Shown: positions 1-13,952 of the stretch, one piece after another
How positions within the stretch are numbered: position 1 is the stretch's first letter
How the letters are laid out: each line of letters begins with the position of its first letter
Assembly (NCBI GenBank): GCA_001643675.2
Contig: LSRY02000043.1
Coordinates: forward strand, 1 to 64,000
Length of the DNA stretch: 64,000 nucleotides
From: Monocercomonoides exilis PA203
Lineage: Eukaryota; Protista; Preaxostyla
Direction of reading: 5' to 3'
Program-made: the position numbers and the translations under genes
The notes under the pieces: model-generated
The model's input: the letters and a program-made list of their open reading frames with translations, nothing else
Databases searched by the model: none
Told to the model about the DNA's origin: nothing

Positions 1-761
1 AAACCCTAACCCTAACCCTAACCCTAACCCTAACCCTAACCCTAACTCCTAACCCTTCTAACTCCTAATTCCTAACCCTAACCCTAACTCCTAACCCTAA
101 CTCCTCAACTCCTAACCCTAACCCTAACTCTTAACCCTAACCCTAACCCTAACCCTAACCTCAACTCCTAACCCTAATCCTAACCCCTAACCCTAACTCC
201 TAACTCCTAACCCAACTCCACCCTAACCCTAACCCTAACCCTAACCCTAACCCTAACCCTAACCCTAACTCCTAACCCTAACCCTAACCTAACCCTAACC
301 TTAACCTAACCCTAACCCTGCACCCTAACCCCTAACCCCAACCCTTAACCCTAACCCTAACCCTAACCCTAACCTAACCCTAACCTAACCCTAACCTAAC
401 CCTAACCCTAACCCTAACCCTAACCCTAACCCTAACCCTAACCCTAACCCTAACCCTAACCCTAACCCTAACCCTAACCCTAACCCTAACCCTAACCCTA
501 ACCCTAACCTAACCCTAACCCTAACCCTAACCCTAACCCTAACCCTAACCCTAACCCTAACCCTAACCTAACCCTAACCCTAACCCTAACCCTAACCCTA
601 ACCTAACCCTAACCTAACCCTAACCCTAACCCTAACCCTAACCTAACCCTAACCCTAACCCTAACCCTAACCTAACCCTAACCCTAACCCTAACCTAGTT
701 TAACCCCCTAACCCTAACCCTAACCCTAACCCTAACCCTAACCCTAACCCTAACCCTAACC

Positions 762-802
<41 letters not shown>

Positions 803-2703
803 CCCTAACCCTAACCCTAACCCTAACCCTAACCCTAACCCTAACCCTAACCCTAACCCTAACCCTAACCCTAACCTAACCCTAACCCTAACCCTAACCC
901 TAACCTAACCCTAACCCTAACCCTAACCTAACCCTAACCTAACCCTAACCCTAACCCTAACCCTAACCCTAACCCTAACCCTAACCTAGTTTGAACCCTA
1001 ACCTAACCTAACCCTAACCCTAACCTAACCCTAACCCTAACCCTAACCTAACCCTAACCCAACCCTAACCCTAACCCTAACCCTAACCCTAACCCTAACC
1101 CTAACCCTAACCCTAACCCTAACCCTAACCCTAACCCTAACCCTAACCCTAACCCTAACCCTAACCCTAACCCTAACCCTAACCCTAACCCTAACCCTAA
1201 CCTAACCCTAACCTAGTTTGAACCCTAACCCTAACCCTAACCTAACCCTAACCCTAACCCTAACCTAACCCTAACCCTAACCCTAACCTAACCCTAACCC
1301 TAACCCTAACCCTAACCCTAACCCTAACCCTAACCCTAACCTAGTTTGAACCCTAACCCTAACCCTAACCCTAACCCTAACCCTAACCCTAACCCTAACC
1401 CTAACCCTAACCCTAACCCTAACCCTAACCTAACCTAACCCTAACCCTAACCCTAACCCTAACCCTAACCCTAACCCTAACCCTAACCCTAACCCTAACC
1501 CTAACCTAACCCTAACCCTAACCCTAACCCTAACCCTAACCCTAACCTAACCCTAACCCTAACCCTAACCCTAACCCTAACCCTAACCCTAACCCTAACC
1601 CTAACCCTAACCCTAACCCTAACCTAACCCTAACCCTAACCCTAACCCTAACCCTAACCCTAACCCTAACCCTAACCCTAACCCTAACCCTAACCCTAAC
1701 CTAACCCTAACCCTAACCCTAACCTAACCCTAACCCTAACCCTAACCTAACCCTAACCCTAACCCTAACCCTAACCCTAACCCTAACCCTAACCCTAACC
1801 TAACCCTAACCCTAACCTAACCCTAACCCTAACCCTAACCCTAACCCTAACCCTAACCCTAACCCTAACCCTAACCCTAACCCTAACCCTAACCCTAACC
1901 CTAACCCTAACCCTAACCCTAACCCTAACCCTAACCCTAACCCTAACCCTAACCCTAACCCTAACCCTAACCCTAACCCTAACCCCTAACCCTAACCCTA
2001 ACCCTAACCCTAACCCTAACCCTAACCCTAACCCTAACCCTAACCCTAACCCTAACCCTAACCCTAACCCTAACCCTAACCTAACCCTAACCCTAACCCT
2101 AACCCTAACCCTAACCTAACCCTAACCCTAACCCTAACCCTAACCCTAACCCTAACCCTAACCCCTAACCCTAACCCTAACCCTAACCCTAACCCTAACC
2201 CTAACCCTAACCCTAACCCTAACCCTAACCCTAACCCTAACCTAGTTTGAACCCTAACCCTAACCCTAACCCTAACCCTAACCCTAACCCTAACCCTAAC
2301 CCTAACCCTAACCCTAACCCTAACCCTAACCCTAACCTAACCCTAACCCTAACCCTAACCCTAACCTAACCCTAACCTAACCCTAACCCTAACCCTAACC
2401 CTAACCCTAACCCTAACCCTAACCCTAACCCTAACCTAACCCTAACCCTAACCCTAACCCTAACCCTAACCCTAACCCCTAACCCTAACCCTAACCCTAA
2501 CCCTAACCCTAACCCTAACCCTAACCCTAACCCTAACCCTAACCCTAACCTAACCTAACCCTAACCCTAACCCTAACCCTAACCCTAACCCTAACCCTAA
2601 CCCTAACCCTAACCCTAACCCTAACCCTAACCTAACCCTAACCCTAACCCTAACCCTAACCTAACCCTAACCCTAACCCTAACCCTAACCCTAACCCTAA
2701 CCC
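1..2703 (-). repeat. Telomeric repeat array (TTAGGG)n on the minus strand, chromosome end
   Basis: Continuous CCCTAA repeats from base 1 to ~2703, with frequent CCTAA 5-mer variants, CTCCTAA variants in the first ~270 bp and five CCTAGTTT(G) inserts. Confidence 0.99.
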
Positions 2704-3294
2704 ATTTATTTTTTCCTTTCCCAAATCAAAAAAGAACAGTTTTTTTATTTGGGGGGTAGTACTTCATCCATGGTATTATTAAGGCTTTCCAATCATCCGT
2801 CCTTAAAGTTTTTTTTCAATGTTTTTATATTCAATCATTCATACGTTAAAAACCCTTCAAAAGGTTTTAAGAGAATATCTATGAATTTTAAAACATTTAC
2901 TTGTGAGATTTTAGACGGACTTTTTTTTCGTTTCCTACTTAATCAAAAATTTTTTAATTGGACAATATTCAGAGTTAAGCCTCAGTAAATCGTGCAAACA
3001 AAACACTCTGAGACGCACAGCCCTCTGATAACTCGGATTCGTCTAATCCGTCCTTCTCAGGCATGACCCCTTTACCAATACTCTCATTTATCTTTACAAT
3101 AGCCAGGCATATGGTCCAGCGAATGAAACGATTAATTCCAAACTAATGAAATCCGTTTTATTACATTCACCATATGTTTTTATTGGACCAACCGTTCCGG
3201 CCAAATCTTTCAAAGGCGGTACAACCAATCCTTCAAGATCCTCGACTTGGAAATAAAATATCTCAATTTCCTTTTCTTATCCCCTTGTAAAGCA

Positions 3295-3797
3295 GTATAA
3301 TATAGAATCTCAGTCTATATACCAGCTTCCATCCACAAGGCATTTAAAGGAGATACAAGACCCATCACATTATATTCTAGTCATATATGTTATTCTACAG
3401 CTCACCTGGAAGATACGACCCCATTTACACACATCCCTTTTAACAGGATCTTCCCTTATCCAATCGTCGCCGACCGTAGATAGGAGGGTTGTCAATATCC
3501 TCGATGGCCATGGTCTTAATTTCCATATCTCTATTTTTATCTTTTAACATCAATTCCCTTTCTTAACAAAAGGCATGCCCAGGAGATTATCAATATAATC
3601 CTTCAATTGTCTTCTTATAATTCTCTGGAATAGATTCTGACTTAGAGGCGTTCAGTCATAATCTAACGTATGGTAGCTTCGCGGCACTAGTTTCTCAACT
3701 AACCGCAAATGCCAATTATACGATTCTAGGGTTCCTCTCGTACTTACTAGAATTACCATCTTGACAATAATTACACAATATCAGTAGGGTAAAACTA

Positions 3798-3835
<38 letters not shown>

Positions 3836-3962
3836 TGTTAGTGGGTGAACAATCCAACACTTGGCGAATTCTGCTTCGCAATGATAGGAAGAGCCGACAT
3901 CGAAGAATCAAAAAGCAACGTCGCTATGAACGCTTGGCTGCCACAAGCCAGTTATCCCTATG
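3295..3962 (-). rRNA. 3' portion (~670 nt) of a large-subunit (28S) rRNA gene, 5'-truncated, oriented toward the telomere
   Basis: Minus strand has the peptidyl-transferase region GGGATAACTGGCTTGTGGCAGCCAAGCGTTCATAGCGACGTTGCTTTTTGATTCTTCGATGTCGGCTC, then GAGCTGGGTTTAGACCGTCG, the sarcin-ricin loop AGTACGAGAGGAAC (~3741-3754), and GAACGCCTCTAAGTCAGAATC. The 3' end is estimated from a CTGAGATT motif at ~3305-3315. No recognisable rRNA upstream of ~3998. Confidence 0.93.
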
Positions 3963-5204
3963 TCCCCTCACTCACATGTTACAAAGGGGATAACTTTTAT
4001 TTTATAACTTGACATGACCCTGGCTGATCTTGACGATAATTAACCATAGGATATATGGATGGTTGACTAGATGATGTAGATAACTCGTTTAATTGATAGA
4101 CCTCTATTTGGTGAGAAAAAAATATTTTCTGGTTTGACTGAAAAATGACTGAAAAATCATTCAAAAATTCATATCTCCACAAATGCTGAAGATAATAACC
4201 TGATATTATTTCAATAAACAGTAGAAGTTATTGCCAACATAATACATATTTATATTTGAAATGAAAATTCTGAGTCAAATTTATTAAAAATCTTTTTATC
4301 TCATTTTCTGTGATATCCTGAGTGAAGAAAAGTCAATAAATGTGAATATTTTGTAATTTTTCATATTTTTTCTGTGTTTTGGAATATCACCGATAATTCA
4401 CAACTAAGATGTGGGTGAAAGTATTTGGCTCAATTCCCCTTCCCCACCGAGATACACTATTTTTAGTGTTTCGAAATTTTAGCTGATTTTTTTTTGTAAG
4501 TTTAACATGAAAAATCATAATTCAACACAAATCGAGTTGAAGTGAATAGAGCAACTCATCATTCAAGCTATAATGCATTTCACCTGATAAAATCAGGTCT
4601 TTATCGAAAAAAGTGAAAAAAAAACATCAAAATGCTCAGAAATGTCTTGAAAAAGGATTGGTTTTTTTTTTGGTAAATTGTTTTTTTCTAGTCATAATAA
4701 AAAATGCAACAAATGGTTCTATTTTTTTCAAAATATCCTTTTTATTCCATAGGATATAATAGTGTCATCTTTCAATTTTCCAAGAAATAATTATTTTTTA
4801 AAGAAAGAATTTTCATTTGTTTTAATTGTTTTGTCGAGGTTTGAAAAAAATCCGACTTTTCGAGACAATGCTTCTATTATAACTACGAGATAAGGGCATA
4901 TTTTCAATAAATAAATTCCAACTGTACACTTTGATAGAAAATAAAATTTGACTTGAGTTTTTGGGGAAAAAAACTTAAAATGTGCAAAGAAAAATGATGC
5001 AAGTGTTGCATATGCGTTTGGACTAAAAAAAAGTGTTTTTTTTTTCGAAAAATCTGAGCTTTTGAATTTTAATTACAGAAGAAAAAGATGATTTGAAAAT
5101 TCCTTTGTTTGTATCAAATTTGTTTTGTCTATTGTCATTCAAAGAATAGCTGAAAAAAAAAGTCAGTTTTTTTTATATGATATTAGTGATCTTTGTCAGT
5201 TTCT

Positions 5205-6107: not shown

Positions 6108-9100
6108 TCAGTTTCTCTCGTATTTGTTGTTTGGGCTGTTTCCTTCGCCAACTATAATATTGTCTTTGTTCTCTTCATTTAGAACACACTCCACTATTCT
6201 GCTGTCTCTTTGAAAACAATTTTCTCGTCTTTCTTCGTTGCTATCCCCTGCATAGCACAGAGCATCTGTCGCTGTCAGCATCGCTGCATTCGCTGGAAAC
6301 AGTCCAATGAATTCTCTCTTCATGCTTGAAAGCGAAACTCTGTCTGGCGTCTGCACCAGGACACTTTTCTCCACCACTCCTTTCAGCCGAGATCCCTCAA
6401 CTTTTTTCATATTCGGTCTCTCTCCATTCACTATCTTCTGCCCTGCCACCTCTGCCTCATACTCCCCAAACGGCACATCCAACGTCAGACACTCCCAAAG
6501 CATCATCCCAATCGAAAACACCACCGACTCCTTTGTTGCTCCCATCTTCTTGTTCATCTGCAACTCAGGTGCCTTCCACCTCAAACACTCTTTTTTGAAG
6601 TCATCCTCATCTTCAAACGCAGATGAGGGCAGAAAGTCATCATCATCATCGCTGGTTGAAGTCACAACAGTTGATGAGGAGATGGATGATGAATCCGAGT
6701 CATCATCTGACGAGCAGTCGGAGTGCATCACAATGCAGATCACCATGTGCTCTGAGAATAACACAATGTGCGGACTCAGGTTTGCAAGAGATGAAAGAGG
6801 ATTCTCCATTTCATCAAAGGAGTGAAGTGCAAGATTTGCCACCCAGAACAGGATCTGTGCAGCTGTTTGCTCCCTCTCCTTCAAGGAACCGATAGGCATC
6901 TCCTTTGTCTTATTCCTTCCATGCAGCAACATGAACAGCGAATCCCTCAAATCCACAATCAGCTTTTCATGTGGAGACGAGCAGGCCATTGCATCCACAA
7001 GGTTTGACATGGATGAGGTGGTTGGGCACAGACTCTCTGGTCGGATAAAAGTGGAATCTGTATCTGTCGTTGAAATGGATGAGATGGATGAAATTGATGG
7101 TGAAGGAGTTCGCTTTCTGGTCTCTTCCTCTTCTTCAACCTTCTCTAATGCCCATTCAGGAATCTTGTCCGAGTCTTTACCCAATATATATTCAGTCGAT
7201 CCACTTTCAGCCAGTAAGTGTTCTGACGATTCTGAATGTCCCAAACTTTTCGCATATACCCTCTTCTTAATTTTCTCATCGTTCTTCTTCTCAGCTTCCT
7301 TTTCCGCTCTCTTCCACTGCTCTTCTGGAGACATCTCCATTGTAACCATCTCAAATGCCTTCGGATCCTTTCTGATATTATCATTCACAATCTCTCTCAG
7401 ATCTTCTGCTTCACTCTTGACCTTCTTCCACCGAACAATAAATATAATAGATACAATAAGAACAATTAGTAATATGATACCCATGATTATTATAATTAAC
7501 AGCCAAAAGGATTTTCCTTCTTTGTTTCCTTCTTCAACAATCCTTTCATCTCCTTTTTGCTCAATCTCGCTTCTGTTCTTCAGGATGAACGATTCAGTTG
7601 CCGAGGGAGAATGACCATCTCCAAACAAGATGCACACCCTCACTTCTGCACTCGCCTCTGCTCCCCTTACCATCTCCAACCCAATTGTTCCATGCACTTC
7701 CTCTTCGCTCACAAACCCAGATTCACTTATTTCGTGTGTTTCAATCTGCTCAACATCTCCTACCGATGAAACAACTCGAAATGACAGGTTGCATGGCAGA
7801 AGAAGTGTGCCTCTGAACACAACGCCCAACACCCCTTCCTTCTCCTCGGTCTCCACCGATCGGAGTGTGGGGATAAACAGTGGTGATGCTCGCTCCTCAA
7901 CAATCCCCTTCAAACTGCATCCATCATTTAAGATCCAAAGAGAAGAATTGGGCATAACCCCATCTCCGCCTTTCAAGCTGGAAATGTTTAGTGAAGCAGA
8001 GTCTGAGCAAATGATGTTTCGATGAAGAGAAGGGTATTTTTCAATGAAAGGATTGTTGTTTGCTAGCATTCCCATCTCGATGACAGCCTTTCCTCCTTTT
8101 ATCGAAATACCTCCTTTCGATGAATTCTCGATTTTAATATCATTCACCTGCAAATTGGAGCCTTCAGAATGAACGAGAGATCCGTTCCATTTACATATTT
8201 CTTCAAAAGCATTTGCAATCTCAATTTCACTTTCTTTCGCAAGTGCTCCAGTAAATCGACTCAAATCCATCGAAAAATTCGATGCATTATTCACATTTAT
8301 TACGCTCCCTTTATCCGATAAAGAAATGCAATTTGAGCAGGAACAATTTGTGAAAGTAACATATGCAGACGATGAAGACACAGAAAGAACAGAAGCTCCT
8401 TCTGAGTTCCTTGAACAGTTATTGAACGAGGATATTCCAATAGAAATTGTTCCTGAAGCAGAATCTTGAATCGCAATGATACAGCCTTTAGATAGATTCA
8501 TTCCGTCAGCCACCACCCAATTAAATGCAACGCTTCCACAATTTCCAATCTCAAAAATATCAGTCTTTGCTTCAATCTGTTCCAATTTCACATTCGTCAA
8601 CGAAATTTCATTCCCACAAAACAGAAAAGAAGGCTTCTCGAAGAAAAGCATTGTTATTGTGCAGTTGTCAATGTGCAAATTTCCATTTTCAACTTTCAAC
8701 AAAGTCGAGTTAAGAACAACAGATTCAATGTTTTCTGATTGGCCAACAGAAGAAAAGTCAACAAACGAAAGAGAAAGTTGTCCGTTTGCTTCATGAATTA
8801 CAGAGCGACCTGAATACGAAAACAGCTGACCAATGCTGAATTTCAATCTTTCAATCCTAACGTTTCCCGATGTCCTGATTAGACTGCCTTCATTGAAATT
8901 AATTGTTGAGTTCAGATGCACCAAGGCGGCTGAAGGAGATTCCAATGAGCGGATTGTCACATCATGGACATCACATTTCCCAACAATTTCTGTTTGCCCC
9001 AAGATCAACAGCTGTGAATACAGAGATGGAATGATGTGCTGGACTCCAAAACTCAATGAGTGGCATGGCGTGTCGAACTCTCCACATTGCTTGCTATCTT

Positions 9101-12100
9101 CGTGATTCTCTGCAACAGATGACACAAATATTGTCTCGCTCTGATATCTCATAACCCTCAGCAAAAGATCCTCTTCCCCCACAAACGAGTCTGTTGTGCA
9201 GCCCCATATCGCCCGCTCCTTCACAAATGGCGCTCTGAAATCTAGCAAGAATTGCTCATCAACAATTTGTGTGTCAATTGAGTGGCATTTCACATACGCA
9301 TCTCTCCCTCTCAATGCAGAGTTGTCTCGAAATGTGATATTTGACAGAACAAAATTCAGTGGATGCTCAGCTGTTGAGGTGCATTCCAGAAATAGCCACC
9401 CACCTCTTCCTGTGTTGGAGCAGAAGCACTCAGAAATCGTGCAAAATGAGCAATCAAAGCTCCCTCCCTCATTCAACACATTAAACATCCCTCCTCCCTT
9501 TCCACACTTCAACCCTCCACATCTTTTCATCGTTGTGTTCCGAATCACCATTTTTAATGGCTCATCATTCTCATTTCGAATGATCGAGATGTTTTCTGTT
9601 GTGTCTTGGGTGACTTCTTCAAACAAACTCCACTCAATATTAATGTTTTTTTCTCCTTCATTGCTCCCTCTCTTCTCTCCAGCTGATCCCTTTGATATGC
9701 TCAATCCGCTTGCTCCTTCCACCTCAATATTCTTCATCGTCAGGTTTTTCGCATTCAACACCGTTGTTGACAACACAGAAATAACATCCTGCGAAAAGCT
9801 CAACAATTGCATTGTCACAAATTCCAGCACAACTGTCCCTCCTTCTGCCTTGATCAACCCATAATCTGTCAATTCTTCTCTCTCATCTCCTTTTTTGGCG
9901 AATGAGCAGTCTTTCACAGTCAATAATCCCTCGCTTGAGCCAACATGCATCAAAACATTCACTCCACTTGCGAATGAAGATGGAATCACAAACTTCATCA
10001 GCTCGAAACAGGTAATGCCACAAATCTTCATTGCTGCTCCTTCTGCTCCTTCAAGCGATGAGACACATTCCAATGAGCACATGCTGCTCTCATCCGATTT
10101 CACTGATATTCCACTCACATCAACACTCTTCTGAAGATACCCTTTTCCAATGATGTTGACATTCCTTTCATTTCCTTCTGGCAGTCTTGTCAACGAATGA
10201 TCCATCGACAGACACGGATAATCTGAGAATCCACACACACATACATCGCAACCTTCGCTCCCAATAAATATCTCTGAGCCAAGTGAGATCCAGAAATTGA
10301 CCAGCGGAATGGCATTCGTTGTGTCATTCCCATCAAAGCCCCTCATAGAATTCAATGAAATATCAGAAAGATGCCCAGTCACAAACGGAAGAGAGGTGTT
10401 TGTGATGCTCTTTGTCAAGTTTGGCGATTCTACAAACAGGTCATTTCCATATTTCGCAGCATTAGGTTTGTCTGCCTCAAAAACAGGGGATGAGATCACA
10501 AATGAAGAATAGTCATCGATCAACTTCAGTGCCATCCCTCCCCCAAAGCCAGCCATCTCTTCTCCAGCTGGTGCTGTGCATCCTGTGAATGTGCATGAAA
10601 CAATATTCATTTGAATGCTCCCTTTCAACTTTGCATTGATAGCCCCTCCTCTGCTTACATCTGCCAGCACTGAGCATCCATCAAAATCACATTCTTCAAT
10701 ATTTATTTCTCCATCTGTATTTTCATCATTGCTGTTATCGATGCTCACACATCCTCCACTTCCAGCTGCTCTGTCGATATCTGTGAAATTGCTGTTCGTC
10801 ATATTAAACCACAGAGTACTCATCAACTCGGTATTTGTGCTGCTTCCAGACAAAGAGATCAATGGATTTCCGCTCAAAGTGATTGACAAAGCTGAGAATG
10901 AATCAATTGTCAGGATTCCTGAGGCTATGGATAAGAATAAGGATACCGATTCTGATGAAGAATCTTGAAGAGTTAAAGAACATTGAGACAGCGTTAGTGA
11001 TGAAGAAGATGATGAAACAAAAGTGGAATGTGATGAAAAAGAAGAAGGAAGAGAGAAGATAAGACTTGACAATTCAGTTTCGATGGTTGCTGTTAACAAC
11101 GCTGAATTGGATGTTGTGCTTGCATCAGAGACAGTCCATCCACTTTGATCATCATTTCCTCGAATTTCATGTTTCTGTCCGGCAAAGGTCAATTCATCGT
11201 TCATAATTATCATTCCATTCACAATAATTTTCTTTGCCCCTGCAAGTCGTGTGAGAGAGTGCTTCAAAGTCAAACATGGGAATTGAACAATTCCACAGTG
11301 TGAATGATCGAATGATTCGATGTTACTCACATATATTTCTTCTGGGGTGGGGAGGAGATAGATGCACAGAGGAATGGCCACACTGTTGTTTCCGTTGTCA
11401 TATCCTCGAACTTTGTCAAATGAATCCAATGAATCTGTAACACACGAGATCTTTTGTGATTTTGCAGTCATTTCCAAATTTGGTGAGAAGACGAAGATAC
11501 AGCTTCCCCATTTGGCTGTGTTTGTTCCGAATGAAGAGGAGATCAGGAAATTGGGATTTTCATTCAATAATCGAAGAAGGATTCCTCCCCCAAATCCATA
11601 TGTTGCTGAGCAAAAGCATCCATCAAAAGATCCGCCTTTCACTTTCACTTCATTTCCATTCCCAACACACAGCATCATCGATCCCCCATCAGCCGATGTT
11701 CTGCTTCCACATCCTTCAAAAATGCAACAATTAAGATCAATGCTTGCCTTATCATTGGAAAACGACATCACTGCCGCTCCGCTCGTTGTTCTCTCAACCC
11801 CATAAAAGGTGCACTCTGAAAGTGTCAAGGAAATCTCATTTGTTGAAGAAAGTGAAAATAATGAAGTTGTAGAAATTGTCTTTGCCCAGTTCACATGTTC
11901 TATCTGAAACATCCCATTCTGTACATTAATCAGTTCTGTCGAAAAAGCTGTTTCTGACGTTTGCGTACTTCCAGCAGAAATGTTCAATCTGCTAATATGT
12001 ATTTCTCCTGTTCCAGTAATCTCAAACAGCCTTGAACCACGATTATTCAGATGAGCCGAGTCATGCACAAGAATAAGGTCACTAACAGTCAATGTGCCTG

Positions 12101-13952
12101 TTAAAACTGAAAAAAGAGACAACCCAGATGCTTTAAATTCTGTTTGAATTGCTGTACTCATATTGCTTTGGCCATAAACAGTAAAACTGTTTGCTCCACA
12201 ATCAAAACTATTCGTTTCAATTATTGTTCCAGAAAGGACTTCAACATTGGTCACAAAATCCGGAATGAGTTGAGTCAAACAATGGCTGATGGTGCTACAT
12301 GGATGAGACTCATTAATTCCGCATGCATATGTATCTTTGACATTAGGTTGCGTTTCAGTCGAAGAAACAAATCTGGTTCTTCCACCATCATTCCTAAGCC
12401 ATTCACTACGATCAACAATTGAGTCATATTTAATGCTAACTCTGTTTGTTGTTTGCCTTGTTGAATAGCAACTTGTATCAATGTTATTAGATGTTGAGCT
12501 TTGCAGAACAATATCATGTCCTGATCTTCCACATGTGTTATTGTGAAAAAAACAGTAATAAAACAAAATTCCATTATTATTTGCATTAATATGTAGGCAT
12601 ACAGCTCCTCCTCCACACTTTGAATAGCAATAGCAAAACAGGCAATTTGAGGTGATTACTTGATCTGTACAGCCATAATGCTCCATTGCTCCTCCTCCAG
12701 AATTTCCTGAATGTAGCGCGCTGCAATTTGAAAAAGAACAATCCAGAACACAATTTTTCTGTTTTTTGGTCATCGTCTGGCGGAGATCAATTGCACCCGC
12801 ATCGTTTCCTGATGAACAGTTCTGAAAAAAGCAGCAATCAATAAGGGATTGAGTTGATATTTCTTCTGCATTTATTCCTCCACCGCCACAGTCTGTATTT
12901 ATCGATGCGCAAGAGCATTGAATAAATGTTGTGTGTTGAACAATGCATTCAGCGATTTTCAAAGCACAGATTCCTCCACCTCTTGTCGATGAAGCATTGC
13001 ATCTTGTGAATGATGAATTCTCAACTGTGAGAATGGCACTTGCATTGCCATGAACATAAAGAGCTCCTCCTTGTGGGGATGTGCAATCAATCCATTCACA
13101 TAAAGAAAAGGATTGGCTTTCCGTTGTGTTCAGCTTTTCTTTTTTCTTCAAAGCATTTGCTTCTCTTTTCCCGAAGTTTATTGTTGTGTTTTTGCAGACA
13201 AATTCCTGAGAAGAATATGACCCACTCGAAATCCCTCCTTCAAAGACATTCACGCACGAATAAATAAGGCAGTTCTCCATAGAACTCCGAAAACATGAAT
13301 GTTCCGCAAAATGATCACTATTCGCATCATATTTCACAGACATGTTCCTGAAGGCACAATTTATAATCTGTTCGCTTTTGCTCTTCCCTGATAACAGGAA
13401 ATTGTCTGATGTTGAAATAGCCAGATCAGTAATGATGGAATTGCTCAAAACGACTGAATTGGAATCATCATATGAAAATATGAGACTGGATGGGTTAAGA
13501 CTCTTTTTGGGGATCAAAGTCAAATTCACCATGTTAATTGCCCCACTTTGTAAAAGAGACAAAGATTCCGATTTTTGGTGGGAAATGCAGGAATCCAGTG
13601 TTGCACTTGATTTATCTGTTATTAACATCAACGATGAAGACAATTGTTCAAATGCCAAATTTTCGAATCCAATCGAAGAATTGGAAAAATGTAAAAATGT
13701 ATTAACAACTGTAACTATTTTTGGCTTCAATTTTTCTATTCTAGAGAACGTATTCTGTTTAAACAAATAATTGTTATCGAACTTGGATTGAAATTGTGCT
13801 TCATTTGAAATTATTTGACCAAAATAAAAACAGTTATAAGGCAACTGTGCAAGAGAGCTAATTTCAATATTTTTGAATGTATCATTTTGTGCATTGTCGT
13901 GCATAATCAATTCTTCTGCAAACAAAAAACATGCAAATAAAAATAAATGCAT
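6108..13952 (-). CDS. 2614-aa type I membrane protein: parallel beta-helix (pectin-lyase/PMP-like GGA[ILV]) ectodomain, single TM, cytoplasmic pseudokinase
   Basis: Intronless ORF. Hydrophobic N-terminus, many CxA...GGA/GGG repeats, four CGxxxxPCx(T/S) modules and a TM helix (FWLLIIIIMGIILLIVLIVSIIFIV). Kinase C-lobe motifs RWKAPE, VFSIGMMLWECLT, PF and GERP are present, but no GxGxxG, HRD or DFG. Confidence 0.9.
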   Translation of the reverse strand: MHLFLFACFLFAEELIMHDNAQNDTFKNIEISSLAQLPYNCFYFGQIISNEAQFQSKFDNNYLFKQNTFSRIEKLKPKIVTVVNTFLHFSNSSIGFENLAFEQLSSSLMLITDKSSATLDSCISHQKSESLSLLQSGAINMVNLTLIPKKSLNPSSLIFSYDDSNSVVLSNSIITDLAISTSDNFLLSGKSKSEQIINCAFRNMSVKYDANSDHFAEHSCFRSSMENCLIYSCVNVFEGGISSGSYSSQEFVCKNTTINFGKREANALKKKEKLNTTESQSFSLCEWIDCTSPQGGALYVHGNASAILTVENSSFTRCNASSTRGGGICALKIAECIVQHTTFIQCSCASINTDCGGGGINAEEISTQSLIDCCFFQNCSSGNDAGAIDLRQTMTKKQKNCVLDCSFSNCSALHSGNSGGGAMEHYGCTDQVITSNCLFCYCYSKCGGGAVCLHINANNNGILFYYCFFHNNTCGRSGHDIVLQSSTSNNIDTSCYSTRQTTNRVSIKYDSIVDRSEWLRNDGGRTRFVSSTETQPNVKDTYACGINESHPCSTISHCLTQLIPDFVTNVEVLSGTIIETNSFDCGANSFTVYGQSNMSTAIQTEFKASGLSLFSVLTGTLTVSDLILVHDSAHLNNRGSRLFEITGTGEIHISRLNISAGSTQTSETAFSTELINVQNGMFQIEHVNWAKTISTTSLFSLSSTNEISLTLSECTFYGVERTTSGAAVMSFSNDKASIDLNCCIFEGCGSRTSADGGSMMLCVGNGNEVKVKGGSFDGCFCSATYGFGGGILLRLLNENPNFLISSSFGTNTAKWGSCIFVFSPNLEMTAKSQKISCVTDSLDSFDKVRGYDNGNNSVAIPLCIYLLPTPEEIYVSNIESFDHSHCGIVQFPCLTLKHSLTRLAGAKKIIVNGMIIMNDELTFAGQKHEIRGNDDQSGWTVSDASTTSNSALLTATIETELSSLIFSLPSSFSSHSTFVSSSSSSLTLSQCSLTLQDSSSESVSLFLSIASGILTIDSFSALSITLSGNPLISLSGSSTNTELMSTLWFNMTNSNFTDIDRAAGSGGCVSIDNSNDENTDGEINIEECDFDGCSVLADVSRGGAINAKLKGSIQMNIVSCTFTGCTAPAGEEMAGFGGGMALKLIDDYSSFVISSPVFEADKPNAAKYGNDLFVESPNLTKSITNTSLPFVTGHLSDISLNSMRGFDGNDTTNAIPLVNFWISLGSEIFIGSEGCDVCVCGFSDYPCLSMDHSLTRLPEGNERNVNIIGKGYLQKSVDVSGISVKSDESSMCSLECVSSLEGAEGAAMKICGITCFELMKFVIPSSFASGVNVLMHVGSSEGLLTVKDCSFAKKGDEREELTDYGLIKAEGGTVVLEFVTMQLLSFSQDVISVLSTTVLNAKNLTMKNIEVEGASGLSISKGSAGEKRGSNEGEKNINIEWSLFEEVTQDTTENISIIRNENDEPLKMVIRNTTMKRCGGLKCGKGGGMFNVLNEGGSFDCSFCTISECFCSNTGRGGWLFLECTSTAEHPLNFVLSNITFRDNSALRGRDAYVKCHSIDTQIVDEQFLLDFRAPFVKERAIWGCTTDSFVGEEDLLLRVMRYQSETIFVSSVAENHEDSKQCGEFDTPCHSLSFGVQHIIPSLYSQLLILGQTEIVGKCDVHDVTIRSLESPSAALVHLNSTINFNEGSLIRTSGNVRIERLKFSIGQLFSYSGRSVIHEANGQLSLSFVDFSSVGQSENIESVVLNSTLLKVENGNLHIDNCTITMLFFEKPSFLFCGNEISLTNVKLEQIEAKTDIFEIGNCGSVAFNWVVADGMNLSKGCIIAIQDSASGTISIGISSFNNCSRNSEGASVLSVSSSSAYVTFTNCSCSNCISLSDKGSVINVNNASNFSMDLSRFTGALAKESEIEIANAFEEICKWNGSLVHSEGSNLQVNDIKIENSSKGGISIKGGKAVIEMGMLANNNPFIEKYPSLHRNIICSDSASLNISSLKGGDGVMPNSSLWILNDGCSLKGIVEERASPLFIPTLRSVETEEKEGVLGVVFRGTLLLPCNLSFRVVSSVGDVEQIETHEISESGFVSEEEVHGTIGLEMVRGAEASAEVRVCILFGDGHSPSATESFILKNRSEIEQKGDERIVEEGNKEGKSFWLLIIIIMGIILLIVLIVSIIFIVRWKKVKSEAEDLREIVNDNIRKDPKAFEMVTMEMSPEEQWKRAEKEAEKKNDEKIKKRVYAKSLGHSESSEHLLAESGSTEYILGKDSDKIPEWALEKVEEEEETRKRTPSPSISSISSISTTDTDSTFIRPESLCPTTSSMSNLVDAMACSSPHEKLIVDLRDSLFMLLHGRNKTKEMPIGSLKEREQTAAQILFWVANLALHSFDEMENPLSSLANLSPHIVLFSEHMVICIVMHSDCSSDDDSDSSSISSSTVVTSTSDDDDDFLPSSAFEDEDDFKKECLRWKAPELQMNKKMGATKESVVFSIGMMLWECLTLDVPFGEYEAEVAGQKIVNGERPNMKKVEGSRLKGVVEKSVLVQTPDRVSLSSMKREFIGLFPANAAMLTATDALCYAGDSNEERRENCFQRDSRIVECVLNEENKDNIIVGEGNSPNNKYERN

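Follow-up and report, generated by a model that had tools for sequence, protein, structure and literature searches.

Why does one non-telomeric string return again and again within a telomere of Monocercomonoides exilis? The window analysed here, 64,000 nt at the start of contig C40, opens with an array of CCCTAA repeats that is interrupted by such a string, and an earlier note, made from the letters alone, had proposed that telomerase with a leaky 5' template boundary occasionally copies adjacent telomerase RNA into the chromosome end. One protein encoded in the window shares 99% identity with an M. exilis protein. M. exilis has TTAGGG telomeres with a mean length of ~2.1 kb (PMC6759080). In the Nanopore-based assembly by Treitli et al. 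(2021), ten chromosomes run from telomere to telomere and 65 contigs carry a single telomere (PMC8767320). The telomere passages of these two papers mention neither variant repeats nor a telomerase RNA.

The units at 1-2703 were tallied as 374 six-mers, 53 five-mers, six seven-mers and four inserts, and the border with unique DNA, at 2703/2704, reads CCCTAACCC followed by ATTTATT. As the earlier note had it, CCTAGTTTG matches exactly at 985-993, 1212-1220, 1340-1348 and 2241-2249 on the + strand (four matches in the window, 0.37 expected; four or more in 0 of 100 shuffles), and reading through the array bears out the register CCCTAA-CCTAGTTTG-AACCCTAA. The unit patterns surrounding the four inserts differ from one another. 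Because direct tandem copies were also found elsewhere in the genome, we take the natural unit to be 11 nt long, CCTAGTTTGAA, or TTCAAACTAGG on the G strand (Table 1). The G-less copy reported near 694 is likewise real and shares 17 nt with the other copies, with an extra C; it may be a genuine variant or a Nanopore consensus error.

Table 1. Coordinates of the telomere array in the window, its insert copies and their match to the candidate telomerase RNA locus (L067)
Feature	Position in window	Strand	Remark
Terminal telomere array, C-rich strand (CCCTAA)n	1..2703	+	start of contig C40
20-nt stretch identical to candidate telomerase RNA (L067:1497-1516)	976..995	+	CCTAGTTTGAA at 985-995
Second 20-nt stretch identical to L067:1497-1516	1203..1222	+	11-nt insert at 1212-1222
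Third 20-nt stretch identical to L067:1497-1516	1331..1350	+	11-nt insert at 1340-1350
Fourth 20-nt stretch identical to L067:1497-1516	2232..2251	+	11-nt insert at 2241-2251
Variant insert copy	685..701	+	17 nt in common with the candidate telomerase RNA, without G18, then AACCCCC

Five-mers (CCTAA) account for 15.5% of units. Just after an insert their share is 13%, against the 15.5% baseline; as a test of re-alignment on UAG this comparison does not discriminate, so that the five-mers may reflect either a true cycle of 5 nt or deletions in the Nanopore sequence. Positions 1-330, the distal part of the array, are visibly error-rich, with many CTCCTAA- and CTTCTAA-like units; this has the look of telomere miscalling by Nanopore where a contig ends at low coverage, and not of biology.

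We searched the M. exilis Nanopore assembly (82.3 Mb, 101 contigs) with the 17-mer CCTAGTTTGAACCCTAA, which gave 134 matches, compared with none for the reversed control. The 100 matches listed fall on at least 43 contig ends on 39 contigs, and among them contig starts carry the string on the + strand and contig ends on the - strand. All loci that were retrieved for inspection are telomere arrays, and the gaps separating the copies vary from one chromosome end to the next. Occurrence at no fewer than 43 ends, in one orientation and with unshared spacings, therefore excludes a local duplication; confinement of the insert to this one telomere, named beforehand as the result that would speak against a telomerase origin, was not what we found, and the differing unit patterns of the window copies agree with this.

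A further genome search for CCTAACCTAGTTTG where it does not continue as telomere returned two classes of match. At junctions, the array ends in the CCTAACCTAGTTTG string and unrelated unique DNA follows (C1, C18, C34, C36, C39, C41, C45, C47, C56 and others). The second class consists of short copies with unique DNA on both sides, all of them subtelomeric except one at C13:635066; the subtelomeric ones, on C12, C19, C24, C27, C33 and C47, comprise the same 18-20 nt. The exception on C13 (locus L067) lies 635 kb into its contig and is the sole copy distant from a chromosome end. The earlier note had anticipated one transcribed non-coding locus. One non-coding locus covered by RNA contigs was found, but with the insert in the opposite register; the register that had been predicted is absent outside telomeres.

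The locus (G000:C13:635062-635083, L067:1497-1518) reads TAACCCTAACC-TAGTTTGAA-TC, or 5'-UAACCCUAACC-UAGUUUGAA-UC-3' as RNA, within the wider context ..AAATG-TAACCCTAACC-TAGTTTGAA-TCAT.. (L067:1492-1520). Its identity with the telomere arrays spans exactly 20 nt (1497-1516), with divergence on either side. A template is expected to hold at least about 1.5 repeats, and TAACCCTAACC (L067:1497-1507), at 11 nt, amounts to 1.8. Complementarity to the insert is found in the template's 3' flank, UAGUUUGAA, whereas the 5' flank is AAAUG. Since the insert thus matches the 3' side of the template in the only good internal locus, it points to an extra alignment register and not to a leaky 5' boundary. 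The principle that telomerase records RNA flanking its template is upheld, although the flank is the 3' and not the 5' one; a fallback offered at the time, a second extended template region, comes close to an extra register 3' of the template.

L067 is intergenic, lying between two genes; within L067:1169-2126 no ORF reaches 60 aa, and there is no reverse transcriptase ORF close to the motif. The 320 nt 3' of the motif (L067:1519-1840) are single copy in the genome. The candidate region has a GC content of 0.42 between flanks of 0.24-0.26, and compared with shuffled sequences it folds well on the + strand (z = -4.25) but not on the - strand (z = -0.29). When the template was kept open, a single-sequence fold, numbered from L067:1480, paired nt 1-10 to nt 227-238. 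The predicted 5' leader helix would enclose the template domain and stop 7 nt upstream of the template, and U-rich and A-rich strands are present 3' of the template. A scan of metagenomes with the 20-mer gave 0 matches and hence no orthologue for an analysis of covariation.

In four runs of a single study from 2024, Illumina RNA contigs span L067:1480-2470 with 0 differences. They are unstranded and merged with a spliced neighbouring mRNA from the minus strand, and in all four runs an edge falls at L067:1480, 17 nt 5' of the template. The poly(A) signals given for M. exilis, AAAUAA and AAUAAA, lie 20-30 nt ahead of the cleavage site (PMC8767320). On the minus strand the nearest such signals are at L067:1840, which predicts an end of the neighbouring gene at ~1810, not at 1480. 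We therefore infer that the 1480 edge is more plausibly the 5' end of an RNA from the + strand. The genome also encodes a TERT RNA-binding domain (C36:2215302-2215691). No Rfam telomerase RNA family matched the window, or L067 even at E values up to 10, as expected for a distant lineage without a described telomerase RNA (TER). Internal T5 runs in the candidate make a Pol III origin unlikely; H/ACA-like and Sm-like 3' motifs are weak hints only. With its presumed strand, ends and TERT binding, L067 is the one good telomerase RNA candidate in M. exilis.

These data are consistent with a model in which the 11-nt unit is a telomerase copy of the RNA directly 3' of the canonical template, encoded by L067. 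We give this reading a probability of roughly 70%; which strand is transcribed, where the RNA starts and stops, its TERT binding and the exact alignment steps are what we infer. The candidate RNA would be encoded at G000:C13:~635045-635400 (L067:~1480-1830, + strand) and read 5'-..AAAUG-UAACCCUAACC-UAGUUUGAA-UCAU..-3', numbered from U1 = L067:1497. In a normal cycle, positions 11 to 1 of the 11-nt template UAACCCUAACC would be copied as GGTTAGGGTTA, and for translocation ...GGTTA would re-align on UAACC (U7-C11). In the off-register step, the nascent ...GGTT would re-anneal on AAUC, 11 nt further 3', where two A-T pairs, a G-U pair and a G-C pair would form with A19-A20-U21-C22. Extension from there would copy GUUUGAUCC and then re-enter the template, leaving one insert, and the predicted product, CAAACTAGG followed by a normal repeat, is the exact context seen in the arrays. 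Two inserts in tandem would result if the jump recurs after A8 rather than A2; the tandem 11-mers fit a jump from any ...GGTT end. The alternative register would be used in about 0.5-1% of cycles, each use leaving a discrete 11-nt scar. For non-telomeric ends the same 3' flank would serve as the entry site, and new telomeres would start with all or part of CAAACTAGG; a hairpin predicted from U24 may limit the usual entry.

The places where telomeres begin bear on this last step. Out of ~85 telomeric ends, we sampled 19 junctions via internal inserts or the window, blind to the junction sequence. In nine of these 19 unbiased junctions, CCTAG continues past the last repeat, stopping at G14 of the RNA (six junctions) or at U17, G18 or U21; in one of the six that stop at G14, a near-match to the remaining motif follows. 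Junctions selected by the motif continue with GAAT, as in the RNA, in 10 of 16 cases. In two junctions, agreement with the RNA flank extends to 27 and 32 nt. Telomeres thus start at a register defined by the template, and the motif-selected ones abut unrelated unique DNA. That a string cut at variable points starts many telomeres is expected if telomerase heals non-telomeric ends.

Several other arrangements were seen near chromosome ends. At the start of G000:C38 (L046), the junction reads CCTAG-GAATC, the RNA flank minus UUUG, which may mean that a segment was skipped or may be coincidental. Telomere tracts of 6 to >20 repeats, ending in the motif seen at telomere-subtelomere junctions, are interstitial at C26:1190855, C21:6716, C43:29574, C83:43085 and C19:15232, 7-43 kb from contig ends, and look like relics of former chromosome ends. 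A repeated element ending in ..ACGAAAAGCT or ..GTCTAGACTAAACGAACGAAAAGCT is joined straight to TAACCC on C12 (L060), C47 (L064), C33 (L070) and C27 (L055); beyond the TAACCC come the healing motif or telomeric repeats and then unique DNA that differs between copies. It has the look of a terminal element that joins onto short, newly made telomeres and so gives rise to nested relic telomeres; the 1.5 kb examined around it held no reverse transcriptase ORF. At the start of G000:C89 (L059:1569-1640), a telomere abuts what we take to be the universal 5' end of eukaryotic SSU rRNA, in reverse orientation, so that telomere addition apparently took place ~70 nt inside an rDNA unit; an Rfam search of this short rRNA piece at gathering thresholds gave no match.

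The window itself holds two further features. A truncated LSU rRNA fragment at 3461-4016 (- strand; Rfam LSU_rRNA_eukarya, 371 bits), in which model positions 2389-3399 are squeezed into 556 nt, lies ~760 nt inside the telomere junction and is a subtelomeric rDNA remnant. At 6108-13952 (- strand) there is an intron-free ORF of 2614 aa whose only match is to a tyrosine/serine-threonine kinase domain, at the C terminus; the ORF is probably one of the expanded kinase repeats reported from the M. exilis genome (PMC8767320).

How well do other origins of the insert account for these observations? With a leaky 5' template boundary, CCUAGUUUG would lie just 5' of AACCCUAA in the RNA and read-through would add CAAACTAGG. 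The array register is compatible with this, and a G stands directly before TAACCC in seven rare array variants, five of them beside insert pieces, as would fit if read-through had gone 1-4 nt into AAAUG, the 5' flank in L067; such read-through may be a minor event. However, that flank would yield CATTT and not CAAAC, the junctions start with the string, as fits entry from the 3' side, and the predicted 17-mer (5'-CCUAGUUUG-AACCCUAA-3') has no non-telomeric copy in the genome, flank-exclusion searches returning telomeric variants only. The leaky boundary would need a TERT-bound RNA with CCUAGUUUGAACCCUAA; it is already largely refuted, and we regard it as highly improbable. Variant repeats can also spread by recombination, as happens in other organisms, and inter-telomere exchange or duplication of this kind (ALT-like or by break-induced replication) would suit the clusters at some ends, such as that of C39, where copies are separated by gaps of 70 and 63 nt. 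Yet the spacings are unshared across ends, the four window copies sit in differing unit patterns, cut-short forms of the string occur at borders with unrelated DNA, and recombination would not account for an internal locus that matches over 20 nt, all of which makes spread by this route very unlikely. An artefact of Nanopore basecalling or assembly inside the repeats is scarcely credible: Nanopore data underlie the assembly (PMC8767320), errors abound in the array's distal 330 nt and the 15% of five-mers are possibly homopolymer errors, but miscalls do not typically yield 134 exact copies that keep to one register, and the same string stands at junctions with unique sequence and in an internal locus matched by Illumina RNA contigs without differences.

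A different objection concerns L067. The template may belong to a telomere-targeting retroelement or to an unassembled TER, and L067 may be the relic of a healed break within a long 3' UTR. Given the short subtelomeric copies with unique flanks, L067 could in principle be another such relic; the element joined to TAACCC on C12, C47, C33 and C27 indicates that terminal additions of other sequences occur, and the RNA contigs carry no strand information. Set against this are the remoteness of L067 from any chromosome end, the recurrence of its 3' flank at the junctions (GAAT and the two longer matches) and the single-copy, GC-richer region that follows, with a good fold on one strand only; nor is there a reverse transcriptase ORF close by. 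We consider this reading unlikely.

If L067 does encode the telomerase RNA, a wider picture can tentatively be drawn. L067 would be the first metamonad TER, its single-stranded 3' flank would be the default entry site, and CAAACTAGG would be written at each poorly aligned initiation or re-initiation. Telomeres and subtelomeres would form a readable record of past termini, healed breaks, nested relic telomeres and attached terminal elements, and frequent breakage and healing would lie behind the 40-50 small chromosomes. We see this picture as possible, though short of probable.

Telomerase RNAs diverge so quickly that, to our knowledge, whole supergroups have none known, and we know of no TER described in Metamonada. 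According to a 2024 review, the TER of Giardia is still to be found (PMC10999387), and the literature we searched links no telomerase RNA to Monocercomonoides. Judged from sequence, two things appear to be new here: a discrete register outside the template, 11 nt to its 3' side, which would be used both within telomeres and at their starts, and a concrete TER candidate in Metamonada. Natural telomeres would show the scars left by an off-template alignment site, and the insert could serve as a sequence tag that marks where chromosomes have healed in M. exilis.

Several known systems share part of this behaviour. The telomerase RNAs TLC1 of S. cerevisiae and TER1 of S. pombe reportedly have several alignment registers or flexible template use. 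As there, one RNA would give heterogeneous repeats through pairing of the nascent end in or beside the template; unlike there, the main product in M. exilis is a regular six-mer and the alternative register falls outside the template, 11 nt away on the 3' side, whereas the S. pombe case concerns the 5' boundary. The closest described phenomenon is found at double-strand breaks of vertebrates, where telomeric repeats are flanked by retrotranscripts of telomerase RNA (TERC-ITS; PMC2246262, PMC8537989), and template-flanking sequences are named among their sources (PMC8537989). In both cases template-adjacent RNA would be copied into DNA beside telomeric repeats at a broken end. The vertebrate TERC-ITS are, however, rare and internal, known from comparative genomics (41 loci in 22 species), whereas in M. 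exilis copying of the flank would be routine, appearing at about half of the sampled end junctions and recurring within arrays.

Ciliate telomerases place non-telomeric primers in a default position during de novo telomere addition. In M. exilis, similarly, the templating region would admit non-telomeric 3' ends at its 3' edge, in a preferred start register; in contrast to ciliates, the entry region would lie beyond the canonical template, so that the start is marked by non-telomeric bases, and we know of no programmed fragmentation in M. exilis. In plants and insects, telomere variants have been used to predict telomerase RNAs. There as here, telomere sequence is the search key for a template among transcribed non-coding loci, but in M. 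exilis the key is a rare insert and not the repeat itself, and it provides a nearly unique probe of 20 nt. Because this probe singles out one locus, a metamonad TER becomes directly testable, which bears on the structure and biogenesis (Pol II versus Pol III) of TER in early eukaryotes.
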